Shown: positions 19,367-61,748 of the stretch, piece by piece
How the letters are laid out: each line of letters opens with the position of its first letter
How positions within the stretch are numbered: position 1 is the first letter of the stretch
Assembly (NCBI RefSeq): GCF_000150275.1
Contig: NW_002060965.1
Location: forward strand, 825,834 to 889,833
Reading direction: 5' to 3'
DNA: 64,000 nucleotides
DNA from: Trichoplax adhaerens
Lineage: Eukaryota; Animalia; Placozoa
Program-made: the position numbers and the translations under genes
Notes under the pieces: generated by a model
Seen by the model: only the letters and a program-made list of their open reading frames with translations
Database searches by the model: none
Told to the model about the DNA's origin: nothing

Positions 19367-21244
19367 TCAGAATAATAATTGCTTTTTCAACAACGTTATT
19401 TGCTGATCATTAAATTGATATAAACCAGGATAATGTAATCGTTCAATTTCTAATTGTTTCATTAATAATTTTATGGCCAATTGGGCGTCTTCTCCTTGCA
19501 AATGGAATCGATCAGCTTTTTCACTTTGGTTTAATTTCTTATAATCGGATAAGTAATATGCAGCTAAATTGAAATGATGGCCTTGCCAGTAACCACTTAA
19601 ATTTTGATCCTTAGCGCCACATTGAAATCGAAATGAAATTGGCATATAAGCCATCTTACCAGGGAAACATCTCTTTCTAACATTTTCCATTAAATCCAAG
19701 GGGAAATTTAAATGTAAGTTATCATATTGCAGTATAATTGAGTTGCCATTACGAATGGATGATAGTACAGTATTGAAAGCAGATCTCCTAGCATACAATA
19801 ATCTTTCAAGGCTTATTTCCACAAATTGATACCTTTTAAGACTGCTATCGTATAACTGAGTTTGTAATTGTACACTAGCTTTCGATGAACCAACAACCAT
19901 TAATGTAAATTGGTCGTCATGAGTATGGTTATAATAACGTTCAAGTTGCCTTAAAAAAAATCGAAATGCATTAATATTTTCATTGGCAATCATAATAACA
20001 ATATAAACGTGAACTTTGTTATTCCACTGTAAATCGACAAGATTACATATTTTATCTGTACTACGATATTTATATAAATATTCCGAGATGCGATAGAGCG
20101 GCTTTCTAAATTTTTCTTTAATGATAATATCGACTAGATAACGACTTCCACGCGCACGATCTGATTTCTGTTCAACACCATGGACATGAACTAATTCAAA
20201 TTTCCCTTTATTTTTTTTATTAATATGATATAGAAGTGATTCAACTATGCGGTAAGCTTCTTCTTTCTCGAATTCATGAATGGAATTGCTGACATCATTT
20301 CTACTGGCGACAGGATTAAATCTTCCATAGATCTGATGCTGAATAGTGGATAAATAATACATAATGTTCACTACGTTAACACTCCGTTCAGGTGGTACTA
20401 CATAGCTTGGACGACCATAAGAGCAGAATTTTAATGCTTCATCCAGATAACGTCGATTTAATCGTGGTAATAAATGGAAACTTTGATTGAATTTAGCAAG
20501 TTGTTCTAGCGACTTAATTGCAATCGTTGGTGTTCGAGGAGAAGTTGAATTGACTGTTGGACTATGATGGCGTGAAATTTTGATATAATTGGAAGGTAAT
20601 GAGATAGATCGTCGCGATATAGTATGATATGTATTGGATGGATCAGTTCGAGACATTTTCCAACCGACCTTGATAAATCCTCGACCAGTGGCACGTGTAT
20701 GTATAGCTTCGATCCAATATTTTCTTCTACTATCTAAACGGATAAAATTGGAAATTTGTTGATGTTGTTGCTTATTTTGCTTAGATTGGAATAATCGATA
20801 GTCGACTTGAGCAATTTTTTTAGCATTATCAGGATTAGTATCGTGACTAAGCCATAGCTCAGCACCATCATCAGCAACGATAGCAAATTGATAATAGGAT
20901 GTCACTTCAGGATGGATATAGCCGAAAATTCTTTGGCCATGACTACCGCCATCAAATTGCGATTGGAATTGATCAATGGCTTGACAAACGGTTGGATTAT
21001 GAGGGAAAGTCGATAGTTTTCTTAAATCGCCTATATGATTAAGACAGTTATCGCTACTTTCCCAACGATACAAGCATAAATTGCCTCTTGTATTAACTTC
21101 TTGAACGTTTCCTTCATGGCATTGACAATAAGGCATTGAAATTAGATCTTGAGCTCGATTAAATTCTCGCGTGTAGAGTACTATTAAATATAAAATGCCA
21201 ATCGATAATAGGATAACCAATTTACTCTTACTAATCTTGGTCAT
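19367..21244 (-). CDS. B4GALNT3/4-like PA14 + GT7/CHGN glycosyltransferase paralog 1; catalytic motifs degenerate, PA14 DD intact
   Basis: 625-aa single-exon ORF with an N-terminal TM. PA14 region reads 'GQRIFGYIHP..YQFAIVADDGAELWLS'. It has 'VEQKSDRARGSRYLVD'. Catalytic positions are altered: YDNLHLNFP (vs DLH), HLQGED (vs WGGED), and no terminal His cluster. Confidence 0.88.
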   Translation of the reverse strand: MTKISKSKLVILLSIGILYLIVLYTREFNRAQDLISMPYCQCHEGNVQEVNTRGNLCLYRWESSDNCLNHIGDLRKLSTFPHNPTVCQAIDQFQSQFDGGSHGQRIFGYIHPEVTSYYQFAIVADDGAELWLSHDTNPDNAKKIAQVDYRLFQSKQNKQQHQQISNFIRLDSRRKYWIEAIHTRATGRGFIKVGWKMSRTDPSNTYHTISRRSISLPSNYIKISRHHSPTVNSTSPRTPTIAIKSLEQLAKFNQSFHLLPRLNRRYLDEALKFCSYGRPSYVVPPERSVNVVNIMYYLSTIQHQIYGRFNPVASRNDVSNSIHEFEKEEAYRIVESLLYHINKKNKGKFELVHVHGVEQKSDRARGSRYLVDIIIKEKFRKPLYRISEYLYKYRSTDKICNLVDLQWNNKVHVYIVIMIANENINAFRFFLRQLERYYNHTHDDQFTLMVVGSSKASVQLQTQLYDSSLKRYQFVEISLERLLYARRSAFNTVLSSIRNGNSIILQYDNLHLNFPLDLMENVRKRCFPGKMAYMPISFRFQCGAKDQNLSGYWQGHHFNLAAYYLSDYKKLNQSEKADRFHLQGEDAQLAIKLLMKQLEIERLHYPGLYQFNDQQITLLKKQLLF

Positions 21245-24200
21245 GACGACTGTTTGGCTTGATGCTTTGATGATCTCGGTAAGAATAAGTTTAAAATTGA
21301 ATAATTATCCTTTCACATACGTCGTTTATGAAATGGACAAGCTGAAGGATTCAATTTAATTCATGGTTACTACCACTTTGTCATTCTTGCTAAATCCAAG
21401 CGATCATAACGTAAGATCTACTGCAATCTACTCAAAAATTGAAGAAATAAAAAATAGAGCCAATCAGTCACAGTTATACTGTTGTAATGTAACTTAGTAT
21501 TGTGATTGTAGACTGTTAGCCATGTTTAGTATAATATACGGTAGATATTTATCCTAAGAGATATTTGGTAGCCATAACTATAGACTGTAGTAGTATAAAC
21601 TCTATGCTAGAGTACAAATGACTATATACAGTAAGGTGTTGAGTTATTAATAAGGTTCTAGGTAAAAATAGAATCGTAAATCATATATTAGGATATGGTT
21701 AATTTATTATACTTTGGTCGGTGTGAATAATGTCTACATAAATACTGTATTCGTATCCATATCAAATTAATGATAGTCCGCAGTAGAATAGTGTTACTAA
21801 GAATAATTTAACCATGTGTAAAATAAGGTAAAAGGTTGCCATACGGATTGTAGCTGCCAATGTTACGAAAAGTATAAAAGCATGCAACTTTCGATTATTC
21901 TATTCGTTCGTTGTAGAAGTCTTTAGTAGTAGTATTCGGCTAGAGTAGAGCTGTGTGTAGTTAATCTTTGTATACGATTCAATAAAGCCCTAATTTTTCT
22001 AAAATTGGGAATTTCGTGATCGGTATATATCACAACTGTACTAGTATGTACACAGAGAAATAATAGCAGCAATTCTACAGATATTTTTTAACTACATTAT
22101 TGAAGTCATGTATAGAATAGAAAAGGGAAGAAAAATGCTATAGTTAGAGTAGGATAATTCATTGGAAAAAGAACAAGGTCATTAATGTTTGATCTGGTTG
22201 AACAATAAAAATCAAAACAAAAACTAGTAATTCTGCTGATTCTCTAATACAAGAAATGAAAGAAAGGAAATAAAAAGAATAAATATCTTTAATTCTACTG
22301 AACTTTACCTACAATTACGACATAACATGGCCTAAATCGAGTTGTTCTATTCAATTTTGTATGACTGAATAATGATTATCTGACTTGAATAGATTTAGCT
22401 ATCCAAAACAAATTGAATTATCAAGGGTATTTTTCCATATAAAGTTTTCAATGTCTTTTGCTTTTCTTCCCTACTATTTTAACGTAAATCAGGATAAATT
22501 AATCATCAACGGCGTTTACTGTATTTGACATTCGACCCAACTATCACAAGACTACAAGAAGCATTTCAAATAGGATTAATTGTAGCTTATTTCCTCTTCA
22601 TCAGATAGCAATCGGGTAAGAGAAACGGACAAGAATCATTGTTGAACAGAGAGTACAGTAGTAGTCAATTTTTCTTTCATTCGCTTTCTCTCTCTCTCGT
22701 GGTAAAAGGTTTTTAAACGCTATAACATTGAAACAGGGTGTAACTTATACTTTATTTAGTCGATCCATTAGGCATGAAATAATGCTAACCGATTGATTGG
22801 CTGTGCATAAGATGTCATTGAAATTCTTGGAATTTTACGAGAACAATTTTGTAATTCAATTAGTGAATAACATTTAGCAATACGAAAGAGATGGCTGTAG
22901 TTTAGCGTTGGTCTTCGCCAATAACCAGATTGATACTGTAACGAATTTGATGATAGTTTTATCATTTTGATACTATCCTAATGTAGATTAAATAACAGCA
23001 AAGGTTATTTTCATTGATCTATCTACTAAAATTTTCGGTTAGTCTAAAATGTATCGATGTTAACCTATACCCAAAGAATGACATTTGGCAATAGATTTAA
23101 ATATTTTTTTCAATGAAAATAAATTACTTTAGATGGACAACAACTTTTGCTAACGATACTTTATGTTGACGATATTGGGTGTTAATTTAGTTGGGGGTGA
23201 TTCAATTGGGAAAGGTATGATGATCGATACCATAAAATACAAAAAAAGAAAGATGCCCTGTCGGTCGATTAGCATTGATATAAGGCCTATCGTATTTGCC
23301 AACATGGTTAGAACTCCAAACAAAATTACATCAAAACGGCCAACATCAAAGAAAAAGTGCTGAGCCTTTAACAACTACCGATTGTTCATGGCCACTTCGT
23401 CACGTAGACTGATAGTATAGCGGTTTTCAAGTTCTTTATGGGATTTTAATGACTGTTGAAGCTATCGATTTCCACGATGAAAATCACAATTAGAATGTTT
23501 CAAAATAGAAACGGGAGACATTTATCGAGCGAAAAATTCAATGATAAATGATGGTGATAAAGTCGATAATAATAAAGTTATAAAATGACTACCGTTATTC
23601 TAGCAAGATTTTTTTAGGTAGACAATATGACTAGTTTTGCTGACTGAGATTGTTGCAGTCTTTAAAGTAAAATAATTCTATATCGCTATCCCATTAAGGC
23701 TATGGTAGCGGAAACGGGATAGGCTATAAGTGTGACATCGATTAATGTATATCAGGGATAGCGTAGGATAATTGACTGCCTATCGATGTTGTCAAGTGAA
23801 TAAGAACTCATTTTATCGTTAGGAAAACTTTGGCCAGAGACTTTAAGAGAAAAGGTTATTTAACGGTTATCTATCGCTATGATAGAACGCAAAAGGATAG
23901 TACTTAAAGTATTTTTCTTACTTACATGTAATATTGAATATTGTATAAAATGTTCAAGCAGAAAAATTGAAGAATTCAAGACAAGCGAGATGGGGCAAAA
24001 CGGACGACCGGTAAACCCTTGGCGTACGACTATCTTTTCCACTGTTAATTTTTCTTTGAAGTCTTTTTTTCTCCTTTTCTTCCTTTCTTTAATACGCTAG
24101 AGTAGCCTAACGCAAGTGATTGAAAAGTATTTAGTCGTTATACTACCATTAATTATATATTAGTGTTGGCTAACAGTAGGTGAAGAAGACAATCAAAGTT

Positions 24201-24779
24201 ATTACGATAACAAGGGCGTTCAGATTAAAAGAAAAGAATACAGTTATTTTTTTCCTGCTCTTTTTTAACTCAGTAAAATAACATTAGGGTAATATCCTTA
24301 TTATAATGTTAATGCATAAAACTAACAAAGGTATTATCCATTTTTCTACTCTTCTAATTGTATTGTTGTATCCAATTTTATTTGCATAAATAATGCCAAG
24401 CAAAACGATCCAAATGAATAGATGATTATTGACAACTTTTTTACTAGCACAGTGGACAGATGACTCACAACTTGGTCAATAAACTGCAGTTGTTCTTATT
24501 AATATCAATTGCTGGCATTAAAGCCTATCAAGGTATAATTCATCGCTAACGTCAATAAAAACCATATGCCACTGACAATGATGTTCTAGCAGTAATTTAT
24601 ACCACTACAAGTCCATCATGATCTCAGCGTGCCTTCTTGGAGCTCTTTGATGATATCAAGAATATTTTCTCACCCCATCGACGAAAATAATATTCAAAAT
24701 GGTTGATTGCTACTGTTAACCCATTTCATCCCAGATGATAGAACCCATTCTACATCTTGGCCTCGCTAAACTACCTTAC

Positions 24780-26990: not shown

Positions 26991-27109
26991 ACTTCTGCTT
27001 TAGTTGATATAATTGAACGTACTTCTTGTTTTAACACTTAAAATTTATCCACTGTCAAGTGTAATAATAAGCTGGCCTCAATGTAAAAATATCATTGGAC
27101 AACATAATA

Positions 27110-30350: not shown

Positions 30351-30419
30351 AATTCAATGACGGACTCTTTCATGATACTGTTTGTACTGAACAGTATATT
30401 AATGCTTTCCGAACACCAT

Positions 30420-30965: not shown

Positions 30966-31093
30966 CTTTACAAGTAATCAACTACTAAGGTTTTCTTTCT
31001 CGTGATTGACTATCGTATGGTACCAGCTAGCTATTCTCTGATTGATCATTTTCCAGGCAATCGGTAGGTTAGCTAAAGCATCAAATTGTAAAA

Positions 31094-33030: not shown

Positions 33031-33048
33031 GGATAGACTGATATTTAG

Positions 33049-34956
33049 TTATACTTGCACATAAGTCAGTTTTGGATGGCATAATCTTTCTTGCTCCAGT
33101 GGTTCATTAATGAAATCTGCCACGATTGCACCAGAATCTCTATGATCAACAGCACGAGATATCGAATAAGCATTGCCCTCATTAATTATCTTAAGTAAAT
33201 CACTCGAGTAATAAGCAATAGCATCAAACTGATTCATTTTCCATATGCCGTTTGGTGCGGCAGAGTTGTGCCTACATCGTTCCTGGAAAGGAATAGGTAA
33301 ATAAAATGATTTTCTCCTTATGGATCTTTTTCTAACATTATCCAATAAATCGTCTGGTAATTGTAATTTGATATCATAATGTAAAACTATTGATTCAAGG
33401 TCAACGATACGTGATATAACACCTTCTAATCCAGCTAACAAGGTATAATTGCAATAAGGACTAAGTTGGATGATCTCATGTCGGATGAATAAGCTTCGTT
33501 TTAGAATCTCTTTAATCGCTGGATGGATTATTTTGCAATCAATTATGTACAATTTAAAGAAACTATCACGGCTGCTGTTGTAATATTGATTCAGTCGATG
33601 GACAAAGTTGGTAAATAACAAATTAAAAGTCGGACCATAATGTCGATGGTCAAGCATTAAGACTATATTAACATTAGTTGTTGGATCCCATTGTAGATCA
33701 CTCAATTGACATAATGTTTGTAAATGCGAAGAGTAAAATAAGTACTCAGAGACTCGCCAAATTCGTTGATTTACTTTCGATTGGATGACTAAGTCAACCA
33801 AGTAACGTTTCCCTCTTTGTTGATCAATTTTTTCTTCTATCCCGACAATTTTGAGCAACTTATATTGATGCTCTGCTTCATGTTGATTCAATTTATACAT
33901 AAACTGATTGGCAATTTGATGAGCTAATCCTGGATCGAGTAATCGATTACAATGAATAATATGGTCGCCATATTGAGTCATGACAGTAAATTTTCCATAA
34001 ATGCTGTACGGCACTGTAAGTAGAAATTGCATTAGTTGACGATATCGACCGCGAAATCTTTTGCTAGCGATGACATAGCTAGGATTGCCATAAGTTGACG
34101 CAGGTAATGCACCAGTAAGAAAATGTCGTGGCAAAAATGGCAAGGTATGATATCGACTTGAATAGCTGGCAGGATCGTTATTGCTTGCAAAATCAATCGA
34201 TTTCTGCTTAGCTGGTTCTTGTTTCTGTGGTAAATATTTCGAGGAAGATTTATCTATCGTAGACGGTAAAAGGTAATTGTTTGGATCTGGCATAGAGATA
34301 GAATTTCCCTGGATAGGTAGGTAACTACTCTCAGTTTTATTACGAAATTGATATTTCCAACGGAGTTGAATTAATCCTTCAGGTGCAATCATGGTATATA
34401 AGACTTGAATATAATATTTACCAGGTGCAGTTAGCTTCATTTTTTGAGATTCTATCGATGGATAATGATTAATAGAGTGCTTTTCCTGTTGCTTAGCTGA
34501 TTCTTTCGATTGATCATGGTATAGAATTCTAGCTGCATTGGAAGGATTTTTGTTTGTGCTAATCCATAATTCTGCTTTGCCATCGGTTGTCAGTGAAAAA
34601 GTATAATCACTAGTCACAGGTGGATGAATAAATCCAATAATCTTCTGACCATAGCTAGTTCCCACCCCTTGCCATTGAAATTGTTGGATAGAGAAACAAG
34701 TGGTAGGATGTAATGGAAAAGAATGTAATTGACGTAAATCGCTGATATTATTAACGCAATTACTATTAAATTCATAATTCCATTGGTGAACACACAAATG
34801 GCCTATGCTAGATCCGGTCAAGTTTCTCCGCTTACATTGGATGCCTACGATGTATTTTAGAATGGATTTGGATGGATTTTGACGAAAATAGATGAGAACT
34901 GTGTTGAGAATCGATATAACAATGGCAATAAATACACAGAGTCCAAGAAATTTCAT
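33049..34956 (-). CDS. B4GALNT3/4-like PA14 + GT7/CHGN paralog 2; probable pseudoenzyme
   Basis: 635-aa single-exon ORF with a TM. PA14 region 'YGQKIIGFIHPP..TTDGKAELWIS' and 'EEKIDQQRGKRYLVD' are present. YDIKLQLP replaces DLH and WGGED is absent. It ends ERLCHPKLTYVQV. Confidence 0.87.
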   Translation of the reverse strand: MKFLGLCVFIAIVISILNTVLIYFRQNPSKSILKYIVGIQCKRRNLTGSSIGHLCVHQWNYEFNSNCVNNISDLRQLHSFPLHPTTCFSIQQFQWQGVGTSYGQKIIGFIHPPVTSDYTFSLTTDGKAELWISTNKNPSNAARILYHDQSKESAKQQEKHSINHYPSIESQKMKLTAPGKYYIQVLYTMIAPEGLIQLRWKYQFRNKTESSYLPIQGNSISMPDPNNYLLPSTIDKSSSKYLPQKQEPAKQKSIDFASNNDPASYSSRYHTLPFLPRHFLTGALPASTYGNPSYVIASKRFRGRYRQLMQFLLTVPYSIYGKFTVMTQYGDHIIHCNRLLDPGLAHQIANQFMYKLNQHEAEHQYKLLKIVGIEEKIDQQRGKRYLVDLVIQSKVNQRIWRVSEYLFYSSHLQTLCQLSDLQWDPTTNVNIVLMLDHRHYGPTFNLLFTNFVHRLNQYYNSSRDSFFKLYIIDCKIIHPAIKEILKRSLFIRHEIIQLSPYCNYTLLAGLEGVISRIVDLESIVLHYDIKLQLPDDLLDNVRKRSIRRKSFYLPIPFQERCRHNSAAPNGIWKMNQFDAIAYYSSDLLKIINEGNAYSISRAVDHRDSGAIVADFINEPLEQERLCHPKLTYVQV

Positions 34957-40882: not shown

Positions 40883-42877
40883 TTAATTTTTCCAATTCAA
40901 TTTACGATGAAAGAAATGGAACATCCCAGGGTGGCAAAGCCTCTCAATTTCCATTTGATGTTTTAGTATTCTATCAGCCATTTCAGAATCTTCGCCACCC
41001 CATTTAAATTTAAATTTTTCAACTTCCATACCACCAAGAGCATCATAATCACCTTTATAATAGGCCATAATACCGAATCCATCTCTTTCGTAGAATCCGT
41101 TAGGATTGGATAAATTATGCCCACAATATAATCGAACAATAATGGGCATATAAACACTTCTTTTTCGAATACATCGTTTGCGAATATTATCTAATAAATC
41201 ATGAGGGAAATTAATATGTAAATCATACTGTAATACTATACTTTCGGGATCATCGATACTGCGTATAGCAGTATCCATACCGATCGTTTTAGAGAAATTT
41301 TGATAATCTTTATACATAGGTATGACTTTATAATTTTGTAAAGGGCTAGCTTTCAATTCTTTTAATACATCCAAATTTTCATTAGAATCACGGCCAAAAT
41401 CAGCAATAATGACACTAAAATGTTTATCGCCAGTTTGGAGGTAGAAATTACTTAATTCTTTGATAAAATAACGCACCCAACGTGATTGGCCTTTAACAGC
41501 CAAGCAAATATGAACATGGGTAATAGGATTCCAGACCACATCACTGATTAAGCAAAGAATTTGTGAAACTTTACGATGATAAAAGTACTCGGAGATGCGT
41601 TGAATTTTTTGGTTGGTATTATCTTTGACTACCAAATCGAATAAGAGTCGGCTACCGCGACGAGGATCGACTTTCTCTTCAACGCCAACATTTTCTATTA
41701 AGGTATATTGGTTGCGATACTTATCATTTAAAGCTGTCATAAATCGTGCAACAAGTGAATTGGTGCGTTTTGCACTGGCGATACGATTACATGATCGTAA
41801 GCGGTCACGATCAAATATTTTATAATCGAATTTACCTTGGACCATGTGTGCAATTTCTTGTAATTTATTGACAGCACCATAAGTGCGTAATCTAGTTTTC
41901 TTCGTGACAATGTAAGTGGGTCGAAAGTAGCGACATGTCGGTAAAACAATGAGATTACGATGAGCTATTTTAGGTATAACATGATAGTTACGACTAAAGT
42001 TGCTTTCTGGCTTACGAAATACTTTACTAATGCCAATACCTGGTTTGACAAATCGTTGGACCATATGACTAGGTGAATGATAATTCGGTGAATGAGGAAA
42101 GAGAGATAAGTAATCTGTATGAATGGCTTGAGGCAAAGATTGAAAACGACCATTAAAATATTTCCACCTTACTTCAACATATCCCTTGGCTAAGCGTTGA
42201 CCATGTAATACTTCAACAAAATAAGGCCGATTAGCGTATAAATAAAACCAGCCCGATAATTGTGTCTCAACCCATTGCCATCTTTTCTCAGGGAATTCGA
42301 CATCCCACGGTCTTTGCCATGGCTCTACCCAAGCGATCCTTTTGGCTTTGCTTGGTTGAGTACCATTACTGAGCCATAACTCGGCGAAACTATTGGTAGT
42401 TAAGACAAAGGCATAATAACCATCTTTAGGAGGATGAATATAACCAAATATTCGTTGACCATAAATTTCAAGATCATAGAAATAGCGAAATTGATTTATA
42501 GCATGGCAAACTGAGGGTCGATTGGGGAAATATTTCAATTCACGTAAATCATCGACATCTTCTATACAATCGGTGAAATTCTCCCACCGATATAAGCATA
42601 ATTTCCCTCGGCCACGAGTTTTATCATTAGGATCGATATTACAAGGGCAACCATTTACGTTGTTGATGTTGTGATTATTGGTATTCTTCTGATAATTATT
42701 GTTATCGTTATTGATTTGGTTAATTTCCATTGTAAGATCATGAATCGTTTCAGATTGTATACTTGATCGTGACGTTGAGAAAAATGGTTTACGCTGATAG
42801 ATTAATAAAATAGCGAAATCGATCACAGCAGCAAGTTGTAATAATAAAAGAAATTTAATCACCGTACGTTTCATCAT
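40883..42877 (-). CDS. B4GALNT3/4-like beta-1,4-N-acetylgalactosaminyltransferase paralog 3; catalytic motifs intact
   Basis: 664-aa single-exon ORF with a TM, an Asn-rich stem and PA14. The GT domain has FSKTIG, YDLHINFP, GFYERDGFG, KWGGED and ERLCHPGMFHFFHR, matching the B4GALNT3/4 C-terminal pattern. Confidence 0.92.
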   Translation of the reverse strand: MMKRTVIKFLLLLQLAAVIDFAILLIYQRKPFFSTSRSSIQSETIHDLTMEINQINNDNNNYQKNTNNHNINNVNGCPCNIDPNDKTRGRGKLCLYRWENFTDCIEDVDDLRELKYFPNRPSVCHAINQFRYFYDLEIYGQRIFGYIHPPKDGYYAFVLTTNSFAELWLSNGTQPSKAKRIAWVEPWQRPWDVEFPEKRWQWVETQLSGWFYLYANRPYFVEVLHGQRLAKGYVEVRWKYFNGRFQSLPQAIHTDYLSLFPHSPNYHSPSHMVQRFVKPGIGISKVFRKPESNFSRNYHVIPKIAHRNLIVLPTCRYFRPTYIVTKKTRLRTYGAVNKLQEIAHMVQGKFDYKIFDRDRLRSCNRIASAKRTNSLVARFMTALNDKYRNQYTLIENVGVEEKVDPRRGSRLLFDLVVKDNTNQKIQRISEYFYHRKVSQILCLISDVVWNPITHVHICLAVKGQSRWVRYFIKELSNFYLQTGDKHFSVIIADFGRDSNENLDVLKELKASPLQNYKVIPMYKDYQNFSKTIGMDTAIRSIDDPESIVLQYDLHINFPHDLLDNIRKRCIRKRSVYMPIIVRLYCGHNLSNPNGFYERDGFGIMAYYKGDYDALGGMEVEKFKFKWGGEDSEMADRILKHQMEIERLCHPGMFHFFHRKLNWKN

Positions 42878-48764: not shown

Positions 48765-50660
48765 CTAATCATGACGATATTGTCGAAATAGTAATGGGTA
48801 GCTAGTCCTTTCGATGTCTAATTCATTTTCTATCAACTTTCTAAGTAGCATAGCAAAAGCTTTTACAGGCTTGTCTTGATGAATAATCCCTTGATAATCA
48901 CTGATATAACAAGAAAGGATATTATAATAATCACGATCAACGTATCCATCCGGTCTTTGGAAGTTGAATCCGCAGTTTAAATTAATAACCAATGGCGCAA
49001 AACATTGTCTACCTTCTATCGTCTTTTTCCGAATCTCTTGCATCAACTGGCTTGAAAAATGGACAGCAGGATCAAAATAGAATAGGATACTATTAGTCAG
49101 ATTAATAGGCTGTTGAAGAACCTGTTTTAACGGAGAAATAATATCACTTGACTGGGCAGTATCGTCGATCCAGAAATATTTTTTCTTTAGTCTACTTTTC
49201 TGTAATTTCGCTTTAATCTTAGGAGTACTTGTAAACCCCTTGTCTATAATCGTAAGTGTGAAGTAATCGCTATCTAGGCTTTGGGTATACCATTTCTCGA
49301 TTTCCAGGACTGCTCGTAGTACAAGTGAATACTTGTGATCATGATTAATCATCATGATCATATTCACAGGTGCAGTGTTGGACCATTGAAAGTCGGCGTC
49401 ATAACACCACTGATGATTGGTTTTATTTTTGTAAAAGTACTCCGACAACTGGTAATGTTGGCTACCTTGGGCAACTTTTAGTTCGATAAAATATCGACTT
49501 CCTGCGGATGGATCTAGCTTCTCTTCAACGCGAATAGTCTGTAACAATGTTAGTGGTTTGCCTATCTGGTTATAATAACTCTGATATCTTGTAAAGATGT
49601 CTTGAACAACGCTTTTAGCAGCTCCTTGAGCTAGAGCAGGAATTAATTCAATCTTTCCACGTACAGGAGAAATATAGCTGCGAAATTCATCACCAAATAC
49701 ACGATATGCTACCGCCATAACTTGTTGAAAGCGATTTCGAGTTGTCAATAAATAATTAGGAAGGCGATTATGACAGTATTGTAAGCTACTAGCATGAATG
49801 ATACCATCCGATATTACGAATCGTTGGAGATGATAAAATTGAACGATTCGATTAAGTTGGTAATTAATTTGGTAAGGTAGATGAAATGATTTCCAATCAA
49901 TTTTCCACCCTTCAACGTGATGGCTAGCTTGTTTCTGAGCTACCGAATTGGCTATATCATCTTCTTGCAATAATGATATATGACGATGACTGATTACGCC
50001 TAAATTTTTCTCAATTTTTCCATCATAATATTTCCATTTGACTGCTAAAAATGATTTTGTATTACCAGTCACTTGTAAAAGCTCTATCCAATACTGACGA
50101 CCTTTTTCCATATAAATCCACGGGCTTTTTGTTGGTAATTTAATCCTCAAGTTCATCCTTTGCGAACCTAGAAAAGTATGAGCAATACGAAATATATTCC
50201 GACTGGTATTATCTCGACTTAACCATAACTCGCAGCTGGATTTACTGACAAGTTCAAATGTGTATAAAGCGTTGAATGGTGGATGAATAAAACCTACTAT
50301 TCGGTTACCAACGTTAACTGGCGACTGATCAACTTGTAGTCTGTCTACTGACCGACAATGTAAAGGTTGGAAAGGAAATGTCTTTGCTTCCTTCAAATCA
50401 TCGATATGCTCTAGGCATCGATTATGATTAATCCATTGGTATAAGCATAATTTACCGTCGAAATCTTTAGGTGTTTGTCCCTTGCAATGGCACGAAATTG
50501 AGCCTACCTTGGACTTTATCCTTAGTGCGCCTAAGTTGGTCTGATTGAAATTATTAATCAATAACTGCATAGGCCGGCGGGTATCACTTCCAAAATCAAA
50601 GTAAAAAATAACGATAAATATAATGACAATCAGTTGTAAAAATATAAATTCCACCTTCAT
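48765..50660 (-). CDS. B4GALNT3/4-like PA14 + GT7/CHGN paralog 4; probable pseudoenzyme, most divergent
   Basis: 631-aa single-exon ORF with a TM. 'GNRIVGFIHPP..SKSSCELWLS' and 'VEEKLDPSAGSRYFIE' are present. FDPAVHFS replaces DLH and there is no GFG or WGGED. Confidence 0.86.
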   Translation of the reverse strand: MKVEFIFLQLIVIIFIVIFYFDFGSDTRRPMQLLINNFNQTNLGALRIKSKVGSISCHCKGQTPKDFDGKLCLYQWINHNRCLEHIDDLKEAKTFPFQPLHCRSVDRLQVDQSPVNVGNRIVGFIHPPFNALYTFELVSKSSCELWLSRDNTSRNIFRIAHTFLGSQRMNLRIKLPTKSPWIYMEKGRQYWIELLQVTGNTKSFLAVKWKYYDGKIEKNLGVISHRHISLLQEDDIANSVAQKQASHHVEGWKIDWKSFHLPYQINYQLNRIVQFYHLQRFVISDGIIHASSLQYCHNRLPNYLLTTRNRFQQVMAVAYRVFGDEFRSYISPVRGKIELIPALAQGAAKSVVQDIFTRYQSYYNQIGKPLTLLQTIRVEEKLDPSAGSRYFIELKVAQGSQHYQLSEYFYKNKTNHQWCYDADFQWSNTAPVNMIMMINHDHKYSLVLRAVLEIEKWYTQSLDSDYFTLTIIDKGFTSTPKIKAKLQKSRLKKKYFWIDDTAQSSDIISPLKQVLQQPINLTNSILFYFDPAVHFSSQLMQEIRKKTIEGRQCFAPLVINLNCGFNFQRPDGYVDRDYYNILSCYISDYQGIIHQDKPVKAFAMLLRKLIENELDIERTSYPLLFRQYRHD

Positions 50661-52624: not shown

Positions 52625-54598
52625 TCAAATATGAAATAAGAGAGCAACATTAGCAACAAAATCGTCTACGGTACCTTTCTTCCATGGTAATCGTCGATGA
52701 AAATGATGATATAATTTGGGATGGCAAACGCGCTCAATATCGTAATGATGATAAAGTAATTGATTAAGGAATGCAGAATCTTCACCACCCCATCGATAAC
52801 GAAACTGTGATGCATTATAACCGCCAATACGCAGAAAATCCTCTCGATAAAGTGCCATAATACCAAATCCATACTCTTCCCATTCCCCATTTGGATCATT
52901 CGGTGATGCATTACAGTGTAAGCGTAGTAAAATGGGCATATAGACAGTTTTACCGGGAAAGCAACGCTTACGAACATTGTCAATTAGATCAAGAGGTAAA
53001 TTTAAGTGTAAATCATAAGCTACAATAATGCTGCGACGATTATTAATGGCTTGAACGCCAGCATTGATACCAGCACTTCGACTAAATCGTTTATGTTTAC
53101 GTCCTAATTGGACTAACTGAATTTTCTTAAATGAGCTGCTACGCAATAAGGCTGGAATGTCGATGTCGGTACTGCCGAAATCAACCAAGACAACACTAAA
53201 ATATTCATCATGGCTGGTTTGATAGTATTGATTAACTTGATGAAGAAAATATTGAACCCAGTAACCCTGCTGCTGAATCGCTAAAATAATGCTAACATGA
53301 ATCTGTTGATTCCATTCAAGTTGATTAATTCGACATAATTGCTTAGATTCCTTGTTTCGATAGAAATAGTCTGCAATTCGCCAAATTGCCTTACTCTTAG
53401 AATGTTGGATTAACATTTCTATAAAGTAACGATTACTTGCTCTAGAATCAATTTTCTCCTCTACATTAATAATTTCAACAATAGAGTAGGTACGATTTAA
53501 TTTAGACCTCAAGTTGGTCATATAATCTGTAATAATGGATAGCGCTAATGGACGACTTAACGGCGAATTACAAGCTACAGCTTTATCGTCATTATAGTAT
53601 ACAAAATCGTTTCGACCATAAAACCGATGATTACGCATTAAATACACGAATGTTGGACCTTGTAAATCTACCATTGGTTTAGTAATTCTTTGTATGTTTG
53701 TTGGTGTAGAATAAGGACAATCGGGTAAAATTTGTCTTCGAATTTCAACATCTAGTAATGACTTTAAGGATAGCAAGGATTGGTTATTAACGGTAACATG
53801 ATGTTTAACAATATTTAGTTTCTTAACTTGGCTACCAAGTCGGACTATTCGCTTTGGTTGATGGCTATTGGACTTGTAACTGCATTGACGTGGTAAGGAT
53901 AAAAAAGAACTGTTAATTACCTGAAATGATGTTTGATTTCGACCATCAAAGTATCGCCACTGGATAATTACATTTCCTTTAACTTTAGCCTGTGTATGAA
54001 GAATTTCTATAAAATAATCTTCTTCCCTTTTTAAGGCTACTATATTACTTGATTGATCATCAATTTGCCAACGACTTTTAGTGACAATATGTTTAAGATG
54101 AGAAGGATTATGATCAGTGCTTAGCCATAATTCAGCAATGCCAGTTGTATAAACGCGAAACTGATAGTACGCCGTTTTAGGTGGCCTTAGTAGGCCAAAA
54201 GCGCGTTCACCATATAGTTCTAATGGGTAAGACCATTGAGTTTGATTAACCCATGTATGCAATGTTGGATGATTCGGAAATGATGAAATTTCTTTTAAAT
54301 CATCAATTTCATGGATACAATCATGCAGATCTTCCCAGCGGTATAAGTAAAGTTTACCATGCCTAGTCATCGATGGATGACTAATGCAATAGTCCGATTG
54401 TGCAATGGGTGGATGATGAACTAATTTAAGTTTCCATAATCCTTCAAAGTTAGGCTTGAAGCAATCATTTAAATGGAAGTGAATTAATTTATAACTATAG
54501 ATCATAATAAGTAAGAATAAGATTAATGCCATGATGACTAATTGACGATTTAACGCATTAGCCATGATGATAGAAATCACATGTGCTTCCTGCTTCAT
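52625..54598 (-). CDS. B4GALNT3/4-like paralog 5; catalytic motifs intact
   Basis: Single-exon ORF. The track starts at GTG 54610, but the first ATG is at 54598 (MKQEAH...). It has a TM, PA14, FSRSAG, YDLHLNLP, GEWEEYGFG, RWGGED and YHHFHR. Confidence 0.92.
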   Translation of the reverse strand: MKQEAHVISIIMANALNRQLVIMALILFLLIMIYSYKLIHFHLNDCFKPNFEGLWKLKLVHHPPIAQSDYCISHPSMTRHGKLYLYRWEDLHDCIHEIDDLKEISSFPNHPTLHTWVNQTQWSYPLELYGERAFGLLRPPKTAYYQFRVYTTGIAELWLSTDHNPSHLKHIVTKSRWQIDDQSSNIVALKREEDYFIEILHTQAKVKGNVIIQWRYFDGRNQTSFQVINSSFLSLPRQCSYKSNSHQPKRIVRLGSQVKKLNIVKHHVTVNNQSLLSLKSLLDVEIRRQILPDCPYSTPTNIQRITKPMVDLQGPTFVYLMRNHRFYGRNDFVYYNDDKAVACNSPLSRPLALSIITDYMTNLRSKLNRTYSIVEIINVEEKIDSRASNRYFIEMLIQHSKSKAIWRIADYFYRNKESKQLCRINQLEWNQQIHVSIILAIQQQGYWVQYFLHQVNQYYQTSHDEYFSVVLVDFGSTDIDIPALLRSSSFKKIQLVQLGRKHKRFSRSAGINAGVQAINNRRSIIVAYDLHLNLPLDLIDNVRKRCFPGKTVYMPILLRLHCNASPNDPNGEWEEYGFGIMALYREDFLRIGGYNASQFRYRWGGEDSAFLNQLLYHHYDIERVCHPKLYHHFHRRLPWKKGTVDDFVANVALLFHI

Positions 54599-56430
54599 TT
54601 TTACAGCCACTATACTGTATTAGATGGTTTAGGATCTATTGCATAGTTAGCAATGTAACGAGATCCAGAATCTGAGATTTTGAGCTTTCCTTTCCTTTAG
54701 TCTACTTTATTTGGAAGCCCACGCCAAGCGCGATATCATACACACGTTAACGAAACATAAGAACTGTGACAACAAATCAGCTCTAGTACGAACATAACTT
54801 TAATACTATATCCTAATGCACGTGAATATTTGTGGCATGTGATCTTAATCTAGTAAAGTAGATAAGGTGTAGATAAACCGTAAATACATATATATATAAT
54901 AAAATTAAAAATAGTATTGTACGATATCTAGGATTCCCAACGTTCTATGGCGCATACACTACAAGGTAACAACCAGTAGTTTACAGGATAGGCGATGTTG
55001 CGACAAGCAACACTGGTGCAATGAGTAGGCTTGTAATGTGTCGACAATTAATAAATAAACCATAACCAGATGGCTACCACAAATTGATTCGTATTTGAAA
55101 GATCTTTATACAAGTTAATCCTATTTTTAATGACTTTATATATAATTAAACCATTCTTGGCCATCCAATGAACGACATAGATATTTCTGGAATGGATAGA
55201 TTTGTTAAGATTTAGACTTGGTTGAAGATTTAAATGTATCGCGTTTTCTCTGCATTTCTCGAAGGTAATGATAATGGCAAGAGCTAGTTTTAGAAGATTA
55301 TTATGCGGCTCTTATCATTTTCATTTGTTCTTCTCAATAATACTGATGTTTTATAATAAGCATAGCAACATTTTTGTACTAGCATGCCATTGATGGAGCA
55401 TATTGTGCCATTTCAGCTTCTGCGGCGATTAAATTGCGGTGCAGCTGTTGCCATTTCCACTCCATCATAACGGTAAAATTAGCCAATGCAAGGCCTACCG
55501 AAAGATCACATGATACCTATCATTACTATTTCTAATTCTTCCTATATATACTACAAGAACAGTTTCTTTTAAAATAACTGGCCATCGATGTTAAAATGAT
55601 TCTGAAAGTAGTATATAATCCAAATCAATACATGTAATACTATTACTATTCACTTGATAGCATCATACCTGTTAGTTACGTTATATCCATCACGATCGGA
55701 TTTTCTACCTTCAAAAAATCTTTCTTTCGCACGTATTATTACGAATTACGAGTAAATGGTCTCATCCACACAATTTAAGTAAGGATTTTAGGTAAAACAA
55801 AGAAACATATAAGGAAATAAATCGATATCTAATTTCTAAAAATGGATAAAGTATAGATGTAGAATCAATCACCCAAACTTAAGATACAGAACTGAATAAA
55901 TTGGATACTTTTTTATTGATGTAGAAATAATTCTCAAAGCATTCTGATATACTGTAGTATAAGAAATTAATATATGAGTAATGTTTTGCCCATTTATAGA
56001 TAGTATCAAGCTTGTAAGTTATTGCCTTTAAAGAATTTGGATATTTAACGTTAATCTCTTTCAATATAAAGCTGGATATTAATTGATTATCCTTTCTCAA
56101 TATCAAGAATTTTAATACCTTGAGAACATGGAAAATGGATCCAACGCTATTAGTTATCATCTAGCTCCCGAAGACCGATAAGTCGTACGTATAAATGAAG
56201 AATAAGTCGATGATATATACAATTCTATGAATTGCAAATTGTTTACACTAGATCTTGATTTTATTCAGACAAGATACTCGTATTAACCTTTCATCTGCGT
56301 AAAATCTGAAGATAAACATCGTATGGTTTTATCATTTTCGATATAGGCCTGCACCAATATCGATTTATCCGAAAGGAAAAGTTTCATCCATAATAATGTA
56401 AAATTATTGCGACGTCAATTCATTTAGTAA

Positions 56431-58386
56431 ATGGATTTAACTTTCGGTATAAAAATTAAGCTGGCATTCAATATTTCAAGAACTATTTTGATACTAATAC
56501 TAATACTAGAAATCTTCCTATTATACTATCTATACGATTATAAATCTTACAAGTTTTCTAGTCTAAAAAGATTTATTCAAAATGCAAGTATAAAAATCTC
56601 TCGAAGCAAAGAATGGAAAGATAAATCACCTGATATAAGATCTGTAAATTTAACTTGTCAACTACGCAATTCTAAAACTCCTAATATTAACTACGATAAA
56701 TATCTGTATCATTATCGATGGGAAAATTTACAAGATTGCATCTCCGAGATTGATGATATGAGACAACTAGCATCATTTCCGAACAGACCAACTTCTTGCC
56801 AGCTTGTTAATCTAACCCAGTGGTCTAATACAATGGAGTTGTATGGAGAGAGAATATTTGGTCTCATAAGGCCACCTAAAACTGCTTATTATCAGTTTAA
56901 TGTTATTACTACCGGAGAAGCTGAGTTATGGTTAAGTAATAGCTCACATCCAGCCCAGTTAAGGCGTATCATTAGCATTAAGCATCAAGATGATAGTAGA
57001 CGTGAGTTAATTTCTACTTCAGTTCCTCTACAGGAAAATCGATCCTACTTGGTTGAATTTTTGCATGCAAATATCGCTATGAGAGGATATGCTGCAATCC
57101 AATGGCGATATTTCGATGGAGCTACTCGTACTCGATTTGAATTCCTCGATAAGCGCTACCTTCGCTTACCATCGTCTCCAATCTATCATAGCAATAGCAG
57201 AAGCCACCAAATCTATAGGATAAATATTGGCTATCAAGAAGTTCGAAAATTAAATATAACAGTGGCAAATAATAACTATACAACATACACACAGCCATTA
57301 CTTGATGCAGTAATGACACGCAATCTACTACCTAAATGTCATTATGTAGTGCCATCTTATATTAGCCATCATAGAAAACCAGTAAAAGACTGGGAAGGGG
57401 ATTATCTTGCACGAGGTATCGTTAGGCATCGATTTTACGGCCGACTAGACTTTATTAGTTTAAATGGCGATAAGGTTCAACGGTGTAGTCCTCAACTGAA
57501 TAAAGCGAAAGCCTTGTCCATCGTTAATCGGTATATGCAAGCATTGGATAGAGCATCGAATCGCACTTATAAATTAATTAAAATTATTGAGGTAGAAGAG
57601 AAAATAAATGATGGTCAAGGAAAACGTTATTATATTGAGTTATTACTGAAACGTTATGATTCTCACCTGTTATGGCGTGTATCTGATTACCTCTATTTGT
57701 CTAATCAAAATTCTCAATTATGTAAATTAATAGACATGGAATGGCATCAACGTATTCATGTTTATGTCGTTATTATTGTTCAACAGCAAGGCCAATGGAT
57801 TAAGTACTTTCTTAATCAAGTTAATCGATATTATATTCAGAGTCATGATGAGTATTTCAGTATTATTATAGTCGATTTCGGTAGTACAGATATTAATATT
57901 CGCGATGAACTCGATCGTAGTCCATTAAAGAAGTTTAAAATAATTCAACTCGGTAAGAAATATCCTAAATTTATTAAAACGATTGGGTTAAATACCGCAA
58001 TCGAGGCAATCGATGATCCCAACAGTATTATATTAATATTCGATTTACATTTTAATTTTCCTATGGACATACTTGATAATGCTAGAAAGAGATGTTTTAA
58101 GGGTAAAACCGCTTATACACCTATCATACTACGATTAAATTGTTATGCGACACCAAGTCATCCTAACGGATTCCGAGAAATTTTTGGCTATGGTATATTA
58201 GCCATGTATAAATATGATTTCAAACGTACTGGTGGTTACGATAGTGTTAATTATCGAGAGCAATGGGGAGGCGAAGATGTTCAGATGGTTAATTCTATTT
58301 TTACTCATAATTTAGATGTAGAACGAGTTTGCCATCCTACTTTATATCATCATTACCATCGTTCTCTACCATGGAAGCTTGTGTAG
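56431..58386 (+). CDS. B4GALNT3/4-like paralog 6 (inverted orientation); catalytic motifs intact
   Basis: 651-aa single-exon ORF with a TM, PA14, FDLHFNFP, GFREIFGYG, QWGGED and YHHYHR. By eye it is closest in sequence to paralog 5. Confidence 0.92.
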   Translation: MDLTFGIKIKLAFNISRTILILILILEIFLLYYLYDYKSYKFSSLKRFIQNASIKISRSKEWKDKSPDIRSVNLTCQLRNSKTPNINYDKYLYHYRWENLQDCISEIDDMRQLASFPNRPTSCQLVNLTQWSNTMELYGERIFGLIRPPKTAYYQFNVITTGEAELWLSNSSHPAQLRRIISIKHQDDSRRELISTSVPLQENRSYLVEFLHANIAMRGYAAIQWRYFDGATRTRFEFLDKRYLRLPSSPIYHSNSRSHQIYRINIGYQEVRKLNITVANNNYTTYTQPLLDAVMTRNLLPKCHYVVPSYISHHRKPVKDWEGDYLARGIVRHRFYGRLDFISLNGDKVQRCSPQLNKAKALSIVNRYMQALDRASNRTYKLIKIIEVEEKINDGQGKRYYIELLLKRYDSHLLWRVSDYLYLSNQNSQLCKLIDMEWHQRIHVYVVIIVQQQGQWIKYFLNQVNRYYIQSHDEYFSIIIVDFGSTDINIRDELDRSPLKKFKIIQLGKKYPKFIKTIGLNTAIEAIDDPNSIILIFDLHFNFPMDILDNARKRCFKGKTAYTPIILRLNCYATPSHPNGFREIFGYGILAMYKYDFKRTGGYDSVNYREQWGGEDVQMVNSIFTHNLDVERVCHPTLYHHYHRSLPWKLV

Positions 58387-59759: not shown

Positions 59760-61748
59760 TCATGCTTGAATTTCTTTTATTTTTTTAGGCTCATTAACAT
59801 CTTTGTTTTCTTCCTCTTCTTCTGCTATAACTTTCTTCCAAGGTAGTCGACGATGATAATAATGAAAGAAATATGGATGGAGAAGTCTTTCAATTTCTAA
59901 TGAATTAGATATCGTACGATCTGCTATATCAGAATCTTCACCACCCCATTCAAATTGATACCTTTTATCATCCATGCCACCGATATTAACGTAATCCGAT
60001 TTATAAAATGCAGCTATACCGAATCCCCATATTTCAGGATAGCCATTCGGATTTCTTGGTGCAAAGCCACAACCTAATCTTGTTACAATCGGAAAATATG
60101 CTGCTTTTCCTTGCTTACATCGTTTCCTAACATTATCTAACATATCGACTGGAAACGTAAGATGTAAATCATACATTAATAGGATAGCATCATCGTTACG
60201 AATCCATGTAGCTGCACTATTGATTGCTGCAGTTTTAGAAAATTGAAAGTTTTCAGTTTTAATGTTCATGTAATGGTGTTTTAGCGAGCTTGACTTCAAT
60301 AACGCTGGAATGTCAACATCAGTACTATTGAAATCGGTGATAATAAGGGTAAAATGGTCATCATGAGTTTGCTTGTAGTAACGACTTAATTGATTAATAA
60401 GATAGCGTATCCATTCTCCTTGTTGTTTAATTGGAACTATGACATAGACTGGAGTCTTTGGATCCCATGATAAATCTGTCAAATGGCATAATTTAGCTTT
60501 TTTAAATGACATTGGTTCTGTACTTCGTTGAAAATATTCCGAAACACGATATAATTTATTTTCTGTCGTATCCATTAAGACAGCTTCAAATAGAAAACGA
60601 CTGCCACGTTTTCCATCTACTTTTTCTTCGATATTATGTACTTTAACTAATTCGAAGCGACTCTTAGATCTCTTCTTTAAAACTTTCATAAATGCTTTCG
60701 TTAGACTGTGAGCTACTTTACTGGGTAAGATAGCGTTTGTAGTTACCAAGTTATCACGATAAAATGTCCTATAGTTAAAATGGCCATAAGCACGATGAAT
60801 AATACGTTGAAGATAGAATGGTGCGGTATACGATTTAATAGCTTTACCCGGTTGTAAGACATAACTTGGAGGTTTATATCTACATTTCGATTTAATATCA
60901 TCGAGATATTTCTGATCCAACATAGGTAACAAGTGGAATTTCTTAGCAAATGGGACATTTTCTTTTTGCTTCTTATACCATATTTGTAGGCCATGACCAG
61001 CTTTACGAAAACGTTGAACAATATAACCGGGCATGTTGTAGATGTAATTTTTTGTTAAGGACAAATATTGGCTACTAATAATTGTATACTTTGAATTTGG
61101 TCGTTGGCTTTTCTTCCAAGCAACCTGAACAAATCCTTTTTTGTCCGCTTGTGCATGTAATACTTCAATAGAATACTTTTTATTCGCTTCTAAATAGATG
61201 TGGATAGATTCTTGATTTTGAATTAATTGAAATTGATTAGGTTTAATTTTTTGCCATGGTCCAATAAAGGCGATTTTTTTCATCTTTTCAGGGCTACTAT
61301 CAGGACTTAACCATAATTCAGCGATATCGTCGGCTGCGATAGCGAATTTATAAAATGCACTTTTCGGCGGATGTATATAACCGAAGAGGCGTTGGCCATA
61401 ATTTTCTGTGTCTTCAAACAGTTCTAACGAATCAACACTACGACATTTTGTGGGATTGTGCGGAAATAAACTAACTTCTCTCATATCGTCCAAATCATTG
61501 ATACAATATTTAAAATTAGTCCATTGATATAAGCAGATTTTTTTATCTGTTGTCGTTATGTTTCCCTTAGAATCGCGGTCGCAACGACATTGAACTTCGT
61601 ATTGGGTTGCAGGAGCTTTTTTAATCTGTGTATGAGATCGTTGAAATAGCCAATACGTACTTACAACGGATAAAATCAAGACTAGAATGATGATAAATTG
61701 AATAACAGCTATAGTCTGCCATTTGCTTAGTTTCTTTAGATTAATCAT
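59760..61748 (-). CDS. B4GALNT3/4-like paralog 7; both PA14 DD and catalytic motifs intact (most ancestral-looking)
   Basis: 662-aa single-exon ORF with a TM. It has 'ENYGQRLFGYIHPP..KFAIAADDIAELWLS', FSKTAA, YDLHLTFP, GYPEIWGFG, EWGGED and FHYYHR, plus a charged C-terminal tail. Confidence 0.93.
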   Translation of the reverse strand: MINLKKLSKWQTIAVIQFIIILVLILSVVSTYWLFQRSHTQIKKAPATQYEVQCRCDRDSKGNITTTDKKICLYQWTNFKYCINDLDDMREVSLFPHNPTKCRSVDSLELFEDTENYGQRLFGYIHPPKSAFYKFAIAADDIAELWLSPDSSPEKMKKIAFIGPWQKIKPNQFQLIQNQESIHIYLEANKKYSIEVLHAQADKKGFVQVAWKKSQRPNSKYTIISSQYLSLTKNYIYNMPGYIVQRFRKAGHGLQIWYKKQKENVPFAKKFHLLPMLDQKYLDDIKSKCRYKPPSYVLQPGKAIKSYTAPFYLQRIIHRAYGHFNYRTFYRDNLVTTNAILPSKVAHSLTKAFMKVLKKRSKSRFELVKVHNIEEKVDGKRGSRFLFEAVLMDTTENKLYRVSEYFQRSTEPMSFKKAKLCHLTDLSWDPKTPVYVIVPIKQQGEWIRYLINQLSRYYKQTHDDHFTLIITDFNSTDVDIPALLKSSSLKHHYMNIKTENFQFSKTAAINSAATWIRNDDAILLMYDLHLTFPVDMLDNVRKRCKQGKAAYFPIVTRLGCGFAPRNPNGYPEIWGFGIAAFYKSDYVNIGGMDDKRYQFEWGGEDSDIADRTISNSLEIERLLHPYFFHYYHRRLPWKKVIAEEEEENKDVNEPKKIKEIQA

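Follow-up and report, generated by a model that had tools for sequence, protein, structure and literature searches.

Seven B4GALNT3/4-like genes in one placozoan array: probable birth-and-death divergence behind four combinations of PA14 and catalytic motifs

When neighbouring copies of one gene carry an aspartate pair of lectin type and a set of catalytic motifs in all four possible combinations, have two functions been partitioned among the copies, or have parts of them simply been lost in different lineages? This question is raised by a 64,000-nucleotide stretch of the Trichoplax adhaerens genome (contig NW_002060965.1, positions 825,834 to 889,833; hereafter the window), where seven long uninterrupted open reading frames (ORFs) of 625–664 codons, designated p1 to p7, are located between 19.4 and 61.7 kb. 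A sequence-only reading of the window explained the combinations by independent retention of the two motifs and termed this mosaic subfunctionalisation. According to the present analysis another account is the probable one: a placozoan-specific tandem array of seven genes would have descended from one B4GALNT3/4-like ancestor by ordinary birth-and-death divergence, p1, p2, and p4 would be pseudo-glycosyltransferases, and the four classes give no evidence for partitioned functions.

Architecture and motif states of the seven copies

The products of all seven ORFs are type II membrane proteins in which a PA14 domain is followed by a CHGN/GT7 domain, the architecture of B4GALNT3 and B4GALNT4. The CHGN domain exceeds the Pfam cut-off in 7/7 copies. 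For PA14 the cut-off is passed by p1, p2, and p7 and missed by p3 and p4, and p5 and p6 have no reported match; the whole PA14 domain with its invariant ELW and W is nevertheless alignable in all seven. By a crude hydrophobicity scan, with no dedicated predictor, a hydrophobic segment of 17–19 residues was found within the first 45 residues of p1–p7 and of two further Trichoplax paralogues, u8 and u9.

The closest named relatives of p7 are vertebrate B4GALNT3 proteins, with bird proteins matching at E ~1e-86. The vertebrate LacdiNAc synthases B4GALNT3 and B4GALNT4 possess the same order of signal anchor, PA14, stem, and CHGN/Glyco_transf_7C domain, and their DFxSxD, DLH, WGGED, and C-terminal HxxH motifs are common to the active placozoan copies. 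With 625–664 residues against about 1000, the placozoan copies lack the long stem of the vertebrate proteins; each is a single ORF within a tandem array, five have no aspartate pair, and three lack every catalytic motif. Literature searches yielded nothing relevant on Trichoplax or placozoan B4GALNT or LacdiNAc. By their sequences, the array genes can be added to the B4GALNT3/4-like family as new members. Recognition of the B4GALNT3 PA14 domain as a lectin reportedly dates only from 2024–2026, and to our knowledge its evolution and its key residues outside mammals are largely unexplored.

The catalytic motifs of the family are KNQxxW, DFxSxD, DLH, WGGED, and C-terminal HxxH. Alignment of the p7 catalytic region to CHSY3 (9q8z/9o4g) has an E of 3e-10 and pairs DLH with the CHSY3 DVD and WGGED with WGLED. 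In agreement with the first calls, the motifs are complete in p3, p5, p6, and p7, as they are in u8 and u9, and all of them are missing or broken in p1, p2, and p4. In p1 one residue is inserted into the metal motif (D-N-LH), LQGED replaces WGGED, and the His motif is lacking; p2 carries DIK and DHRDS at the catalytic positions; and in p4 the sequence is DPA and the WGGED segment is deleted. The Pfam Glyco_transf_7C match is restricted to p3, p5, p6, and p7. Judged by their motifs, p1, p2, and p4 would best be treated as relatives by descent and not filed as enzymes, while beta-1,4-linked N-acetylgalactosamine transfer and the donor and acceptor specificity of the copies cannot be read from motifs of this kind.

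The four residues that precede the invariant ELW in PA14 loop 1 were read from a seven-way alignment and from a hidden Markov model alignment with 52 family representatives (Table 1), and they confirmed the earlier site readings for all copies together with the positions of the p1 and p7 sites. The aspartate pair (DD) is present in p1 and p7 only; p2 retains the first Asp, and p3–p6 retain neither. As a description, the four classes therefore stand: DD with catalysis in p7, DD without catalysis in p1, catalysis without DD in p3, p5, and p6, and neither in p2 and p4. The 2 x 2 table of DD against catalysis has no power, its Fisher p being 1.0 with seven copies or with nine.

More can be learned from the family as a whole. 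Among the sampled clusters at 50% identity 26 had DD and intact catalysis, 24 had intact catalysis without DD, one had DD without catalysis (p1), and five, including p4, had neither. DD is absent in 24/50 catalytically intact clusters across Holozoa, and since about half of the active clusters do without it, the calcium site is dispensable for catalysis. The pair is present in the unicellular holozoan Pigoraptor chileana, in glass sponges, and in vertebrates, and absent in several coral and Nematostella members; because the outgroups carry it, DD is taken as ancestral. Two Pigoraptor chileana proteins from EukProt (P0123 and P0144) combine PA14 and CHGN domains with DD and the full catalytic motifs, so the B4GALNT3/4-type fusion is older than animals. 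No inactive member comparable to p1, p2, and p4 was seen among the sampled vertebrate, cnidarian, sponge, and Pigoraptor clusters, where single-motif changes were the most that occurred (P0152, P0211, and P0237).

Calcium site of the PA14 domain

The DD pair was proposed to correspond to DcisD, the calcium-chelating pair of fungal PA14 lectins, and several lines of evidence agree with this. The p7 PA14 domain also exceeds the Pfam GLEYA cut-off, and in phmmer alignment with Epa6A and Epa1A the p7 segment FAIAADDIAELW was placed on FTISADDLLFVNF, so that AADD of p7 is aligned with the Epa ISADD, that is, with DcisD. An AlphaFold model of the p7 PA14 domain built from a 46-row alignment had a predicted local distance difference test (pLDDT) score of 92.7; it was used instead of a full-length single-sequence model, which reached a pLDDT of 36 and was discarded. 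In Foldseek search this model matched Epa6A first (E 8e-9), then Epa1A and Epa9A (E ~1e-8), and further Cea1A, a Marinomonas sugar-binding PA14, Flo1/Flo5, and anthrax PA.

The proposed superposition on Flo5 and Epa1 was obtained at the level of the whole domain: VIA-align gave Z-scores of 12–16 over 125–160 residues, spanning the entire domain (Cea1A 13.6, Flo5 12.9, Epa1A 12.4), while the placement of DD on DcisD rests on the sequence alignment. The fold was examined for p7 only, and the structural comparison yields aligned ranges and not residue pairs. Thus, as far as these tools show, DD is probably an ancestral loop-1 motif homologous to DcisD, the cis bond itself being unreadable from sequence. 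The modelled p7 domain appears to share the beta-sandwich fold of the PA14/Flo5-like (GLEYA) adhesin A domains of fungi (Flo5, Epa1/6/9, and Cea1), but the placozoan PA14 is built into the interior of a Golgi-type transferase, where the fungal one forms the tip of a cell-wall adhesin, and it lacks the N- and C-terminal neck disulfides of the adhesins.

In human B4GALNT3 the PA14 domain is a lectin which binds sulfated glycans and promotes the action of the enzyme on glycoproteins; D189, D190, Q251, N252, and E254 contact calcium in models, and N252A has the largest effect (PMC13018970). The matching DD pointed out earlier for B4GALNT3 is thus D189/D190, which corresponds to the placozoan loop-1 DD, as Q251 corresponds to the loop-2 Gln. 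Fungal adhesins require DcisD plus an Asn in calcium-binding loop 2, and those without this Asn are regarded as non-lectins (PMC6218569); by alignment, Flo5 Y222-S-N224 is equivalent to H-K-Q251 of the family. When loop 1 is listed with the loop-2 equivalents of human Q251, N252, E253, and E254, in this order, the states are DD and QADK in p7, DD and RATG in p1, DG and MIAP in p2, NS and QRLA in p3, KS and TGNT in p4, TG and QAKV in p5, TG and NIAM in p6, SG and HGVG in u8, and IG and SGSK in u9. The complete human ligand set is found in no Trichoplax copy. The nearest is p7 with D, D, Q, A, K against D, D, Q, N, E, where the differing N252 is the most important human residue. At the loop-2 ligand position Gln is found in p3 and p5 and Asn in p6, all three copies lacking DD, while p1 has Arg; the fungal adhesins have the essential Asn where p7 has Gln and p1 Arg. 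DD by itself is insufficient to define a calcium site on this comparison of sequences.

The family supports the same rule. Gln or Asn occupies the first loop-2 position in 25/26 DD-bearing two-domain representatives and in 10/28 of those without DD (Fisher p 2e-6, with no correction for phylogeny). In proteins with multiple PA14 domains (n=77) this position is Glu, Gln, Asp, or Asn in 238/239 DD-bearing repeats, and in total Gln, Asn, Glu, or Asp was found in 263/265 DD-bearing domains, p1 being one of the two exceptions. The usable rule from the survey is therefore that DD occurs almost always together with one of these four residues in loop 2.

The multi-PA14 proteins are themselves of note. 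Some of the best matches to the p7 PA14 domain are very large proteins of up to 5041 residues with 3–8 tandem PA14 domains (P0122, P0125, P0139, and 74 others), P0122 scoring E 5e-100; DD occurs in 241/302 of their repeats and is nearly always accompanied by H-K-E in loop 2. A separate pattern was seen within the array, where the Gln or Asn at the position of human Q251 is retained in exactly p3, p5, p6, and p7 and lost in the inactive p1, p2, and p4, regardless of DD. It is broken by u8 and u9, which have complete catalytic motifs and no loop-2 Gln or Asn, and it may be due to chance or to a structural role at the interface of the PA14 and catalytic domains.

The proposal of partitioned functions can be weighed on p1. 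Under that proposal p1 is a calcium-dependent DcisD membrane lectin which recruits acceptors for the active copies, and the loss of DD in p3, p5, and p6 has changed their choice of acceptor. It draws on the lectin activity of the human PA14 domain (PMC13018970) and on the conservation of p1, which is under purifying selection and whose VADDG and loop HTRATGRG are identical in the distant orthologue P0271. The site of p4 has drifted (SKSS in p4, TISS in its orthologue) although both of its flanks are conserved, and this suggests selective maintenance of DD in the copies that have it. AADD of p7 is conserved in the p7 orthologue. The loop-2 Arg of p1 stands against it, since no acidic or amide residue follows (RATG), and so do the survey counts given above and the treatment of adhesins without loop-2 Asn as non-lectins (PMC6218569). 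Because the conserved Arg replaces the loop-2 calcium ligand, DD of p1 is more likely part of a remodelled, possibly calcium-independent surface than a DcisD site of the classical lectin type. Of the earlier proposal for p1, a conserved, membrane-anchored, non-catalytic protein has been upheld, and the DcisD calcium lectin has been weakened.

History of the losses and the inactive copies

The main tree was inferred by careful maximum likelihood under a site-heterogeneous model from 50 rows and 465 columns. The seven copies and the p7 orthologue P0001 form a clade (100/99) that excludes u8 and u9, and within it p5 and p6 (100), p7 and P0001 (100), and p1, p2, and p4 (100/99) are grouped. The branch of p7 is by far the shortest (0.14), those of p4 and p2 reach 2.3 and 1.6; with all catalytic motifs, DD, and the loop-2 Gln preserved, p7 is indeed ancestral-like, as had been supposed. 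The unlinked paralogues u8 (L008:1327-3246, G000:C1411) and u9 (L009:1300-3288, G000:C1405) are uninterrupted genes elsewhere in the genome, lack DD (SSGN and SIGS), and fall near the base of the metazoan sequences.

Since p1, p2, and p4 group together in every full tree, catalysis was probably lost once, in their common ancestor. DD, judging from the same sequences, appears to have been lost at least 2–4 times within the array, and an exclusive clade of the DD-bearing copies is rejected by the approximately unbiased test (p-AU 0.009). The replacements differ, being DG in p2, NS in p3, KS in p4, and TG in p5 and p6, with the Ser codon AGT in p3 and TCC in p4. About one loss of catalysis and a few losses of DD are enough to produce the four classes, so the mosaic claim carries no statistical weight. 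Although all four classes occur, catalysis was probably lost only once, active members without DD are common family-wide, and seven to nine copies show neither association nor dissociation; independent retention was therefore an over-reading of these classes, and partitioned functions with p1 as a calcium lectin are considered unlikely.

The history may then be pictured as follows. The ancestor would have had an N-terminal signal anchor, a PA14 domain with a calcium site (DD in loop 1 and Gln or Asn in loop 2), and a CHGN/GT7 beta-1,4-hexosaminyltransferase domain with a full catalytic site. Keeping DD, the loop-2 Gln, and catalysis, p7 is most likely a Golgi glycosyltransferase with a calcium- and glycan-binding PA14 domain, like human B4GALNT3. 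In p3, p5, and p6 catalysis was retained and loop 1 remodelled; they are presumably active transferases, and because such remodelling is recurrent across the family, their PA14 domains probably no longer chelate calcium in the canonical way. From the probably single loss of catalysis p1, p2, and p4 would have descended, perhaps with a binding, scaffolding, or regulatory role.

Whether these three copies are functional can be judged from their orthologues. The Trichoplax sp. H2 proteins are 99.0–99.4% identical to those of the window (p1 and p2 99.4% each), and contig NOWV01000015.1 (GCA_003344405.1) holds the entire cluster with all seven copies intact. More distant orthologues were recovered from placozoan-like contigs of 31–32% GC in Logan run SRR30664517 and in metagenome assemblies of the European Nucleotide Archive. 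The ratio of nonsynonymous to synonymous substitution rates (dN/dS) is 0.18 for p1 and P0271 (69% amino acid identity), 0.14–0.18 for p4 and P0280 (58%), and 0.07–0.11 for p7 and P0001 (78%), these values being approximate because dS is saturated (1.2–1.9). In the comparison of p1 with P0271 the former catalytic domain is conserved at 74%, the PA14 domain at 70%, and the linker at 53%.

Neutral decay of p1, p2, and p4 as pseudogenes, finished or in progress, would account for the absence of any intact catalytic motif and for the long branches of p4 and p2, and the 14:8 ratio of nonsynonymous to synonymous differences between H1 and H2 in the inactive copies is not significantly off the neutral expectation (binomial p 0.21). 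On the other hand, intact ORFs of 625–635 codons with a signal anchor are maintained in a genome of 33% GC, all three copies are intact in H2, and for p1 and p4 full-length orthologues exist at the identities and dN/dS given above, with the former catalytic domain of p1 better conserved than its linker. Thus, p1, p2, and p4 are not decaying pseudogenes: ORFs of more than 600 codons are kept in an AT-rich genome, and the p1 and p4 orthologues are under purifying selection. For p1 and p4, where catalytic motifs are lost and purifying selection is found together, the pseudogene explanation is largely refuted, and as a whole it is very improbable. The intact distant orthologues under purifying selection indicate that p1 and p4 are functional non-catalytic proteins, and p2, with its intact ORF, is probably one as well.

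A further explanation attributes the union of p1, p2, and p4 to an artefact of long branches and supposes that catalysis was lost two or three times, recurrently and possibly under selection. The degenerate motifs differ among the three copies (D-N-LH, DIK, and DPA; LQGED, DHRDS, and a deletion), no other branch of the tree is as long as those of p2 and p4, for which the treekit program gave a warning, and a tree from the PA14 domain alone does not recover the trio as a clade. The clade has, however, 100/99 support under the site-heterogeneous model and persists after either long branch is dropped, as p1 and p2 without p4 (78/95) and as p1 and p4 without p2 (96/98). Repeated loss is accordingly rated as rather improbable, slightly more so than partitioned functions, and birth-and-death divergence with a probably single loss of catalysis remains the account we prefer.

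Several points weigh against this account and limit its details. Attraction of the long p4 and p2 branches may play a part and would imply two or three separate losses, and the tree from the PA14 domain leaves p1, p2, and p4 unresolved for lack of signal. Their clade is sister to p3 in the main tree (96/80) and sister to p7 in the tree without p2 (96/98), and because of this unstable position the number of DD losses is bounded only at 2–4. Strict parsimony on the main-tree topology also permits one loss of DD and a regain in p1; such a regain was judged less likely than independent losses, given the differing residues and codons and the first Asp retained in p2. The perfect conservation of the loop-1 and loop-2 residues of p1 would also fit a real, unusual binding site. 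Besides the saturation of dS, the differences between H1 and H2 (4–11 per gene; 14 nonsynonymous to 8 synonymous in the inactive and 9 to 13 in the active copies, Fisher p 0.23) are too few to separate the two classes. No distant orthologue of p2, p3, p5, or p6 was recovered, although no dedicated search was made and a search with the p1/p2/p4 alignment gave only p1-like matches. Finally, the functions proposed for all seven copies are read from sequence.

What p1, p2, and p4 may do is suggested by CHPF and CHPF2, the partners of CHSY1/3 within the Pfam CHGN family, which are likewise conserved inactive paralogues of active enzymes. Of the human proteins, the chondroitin synthases carry the catalytic activity, and complex formation depends on the polymerisation factors (PMC12748766). 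By this analogy the trio, as a conserved placozoan clade of pseudo-glycosyltransferases, might serve the active copies in the Golgi as non-catalytic partners or as regulators or might bind glycans or UDP-sugars (uridine diphosphate sugars), and DD of p1 was perhaps re-used opposite the Arg as a calcium-independent surface; we regard this as a tentative possibility, less probable than not. Co-folding of p7 residues 240–650 with p1 residues 39–625, with alignments not used, had a score of 0.00 and gave no answer for or against binding. The CHPF proteins have two glycosyltransferase domains and no PA14 domain, unlike p1, p2, and p4, and the resemblance would concern only a possible mode of action and not family membership; it should be taken as a lead and not as a result.

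The conserved pseudoenzyme clade is the new and most interesting outcome that the sequences suggest: it would be the first described for the B4GALNT3/4-like family, and if its members do work with the active copies, a parallel to CHSY and CHPF would follow. In an early-branching animal, the array as a whole amounts to a series of mutants made by nature: the site is near-ancestral in one copy, DD is missing from three active copies, and catalysis from three conserved ones. These findings are not surprising enough to alter the view of the field.

Coordinates and neighbourhood of the array

The genome assembly comprises 105.6 Mb in 1414 contigs with about 33% GC. The features of the array are collected in Table 1.

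Table 1. Features of the seven-gene array, in window coordinates (aa, amino acids)
Feature	Position	Strand	Basis
p1, 625 aa, PA14 and degenerate CHGN, DD present, non-catalytic	19367-21244	-	ORF; Pfam PA14 35 bits, CHGN 30 bits, no Glyco_transf_7C
p1 PA14 loop-1 site ADDG, residues 124-127	20864-20875	-	alignment
p1 PA14 loop-2 HTRATG, Arg at the human Q251 / Flo5 N224 position	20684-20701	-	alignment
p1 degenerate metal motif YD-N-LH, one residue inserted into the family DLH	19712-19726	-	alignment
p1 LQGED replacing WGGED	19487-19501	-	alignment
p2, 635 aa, PA14 and degenerate CHGN, non-catalytic, DIK, DHRDS	33049-34956	-	ORF, Pfam, alignment
p2 PA14 site TDGK	34576-34587	-	alignment
p3, 664 aa, complete catalytic motifs, loop-2 Gln retained	40883-42877	-	ORF, Pfam, alignment
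p3 PA14 site TNSF	42386-42397	-	alignment
p3 loop-2 Gln/Asn site	42188-42205		alignment
p3 DLH	41216-41227	-	alignment
p3 WGGED	40988-41002	-	alignment
p4, 631 aa, most divergent copy, non-catalytic, DPA, WGGED segment deleted	48765-50660	-	ORF, Pfam, alignment
p4 PA14 site SKSS	50235-50246	-	alignment
p5, ~657-661 aa, catalytic motifs intact	52625-54610	-	ORF, Pfam, alignment
p5 PA14 site TTGI	54137-54148	-	alignment
p5 loop-2 Gln/Asn site	53981-53998		alignment
p6, 651 aa, catalytic motifs intact, sister of p5	56431-58386	+	ORF, Pfam, alignment, tree
p6 PA14 site TTGE	56908-56919	+	alignment
p6 loop-2 Gln/Asn site	57064-57081		alignment
p7, 662 aa, slowest-evolving, PA14 and complete CHGN/GT7	59760-61748	-	ORF, Pfam, alignment, tree
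p7 PA14 loop-1 site ADDI, residues 139-142, probably homologous to DcisD	61323-61334	-	alignment
p7 PA14 loop-2 HAQADK, Gln/Ala/Asp/Lys at human Q251/N252/E253/E254	61140-61157	-	alignment; human residues from PMC13018970
p7 YDLH metal-binding motif, aligned with CHSY3 DVD	60162-60173	-	alignment
p7 WGGED motif	59934-59948	-	alignment

In the Trichoplax sp. H2 annotation 6/7 copies are single-exon genes. The exception is p5, which is modelled there with an additional upstream exon and an intron, its 649 residues taking up 2102 bases; its ORF in the window starts with GTG, a start taken from the bacterial code, and the first ATG lies four codons downstream.

Partial duplicates of p6 and p7 are located just past the window at G000:C1392:893105-894894 (L010:1510-2352 on the plus strand and L010:2658-3197 on the minus strand), at the contig end, and also at G000:C1412:29-754 (L002). 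The p6 fragment is near-identical to the C-terminal 280 residues of p6, and the p7 fragment of 179 residues is about 90% identical to the p7 C-terminus; another fragment, next to a stretch of N where a contig begins, is 95% identical to p7 residues 62–303 and retains AADDIAELW. The fragments stem either from a segmental duplication of recent date that gaps in the assembly have interrupted or from an artefact of haplotypes or of assembly.

Between p1, p2, and p3 the H2 annotation places small genes (140 and 162 residues) without Pfam matches, and a Fumble (pantothenate kinase) gene is located on the 3' side of the p1 coding sequence, where the window coordinates are lower; the positions used for the neighbouring genes were ~21.3–33 kb and 35–40.8 kb of the window and L018:6933-7930, L018:17998-19144, and L019:10129-13878.

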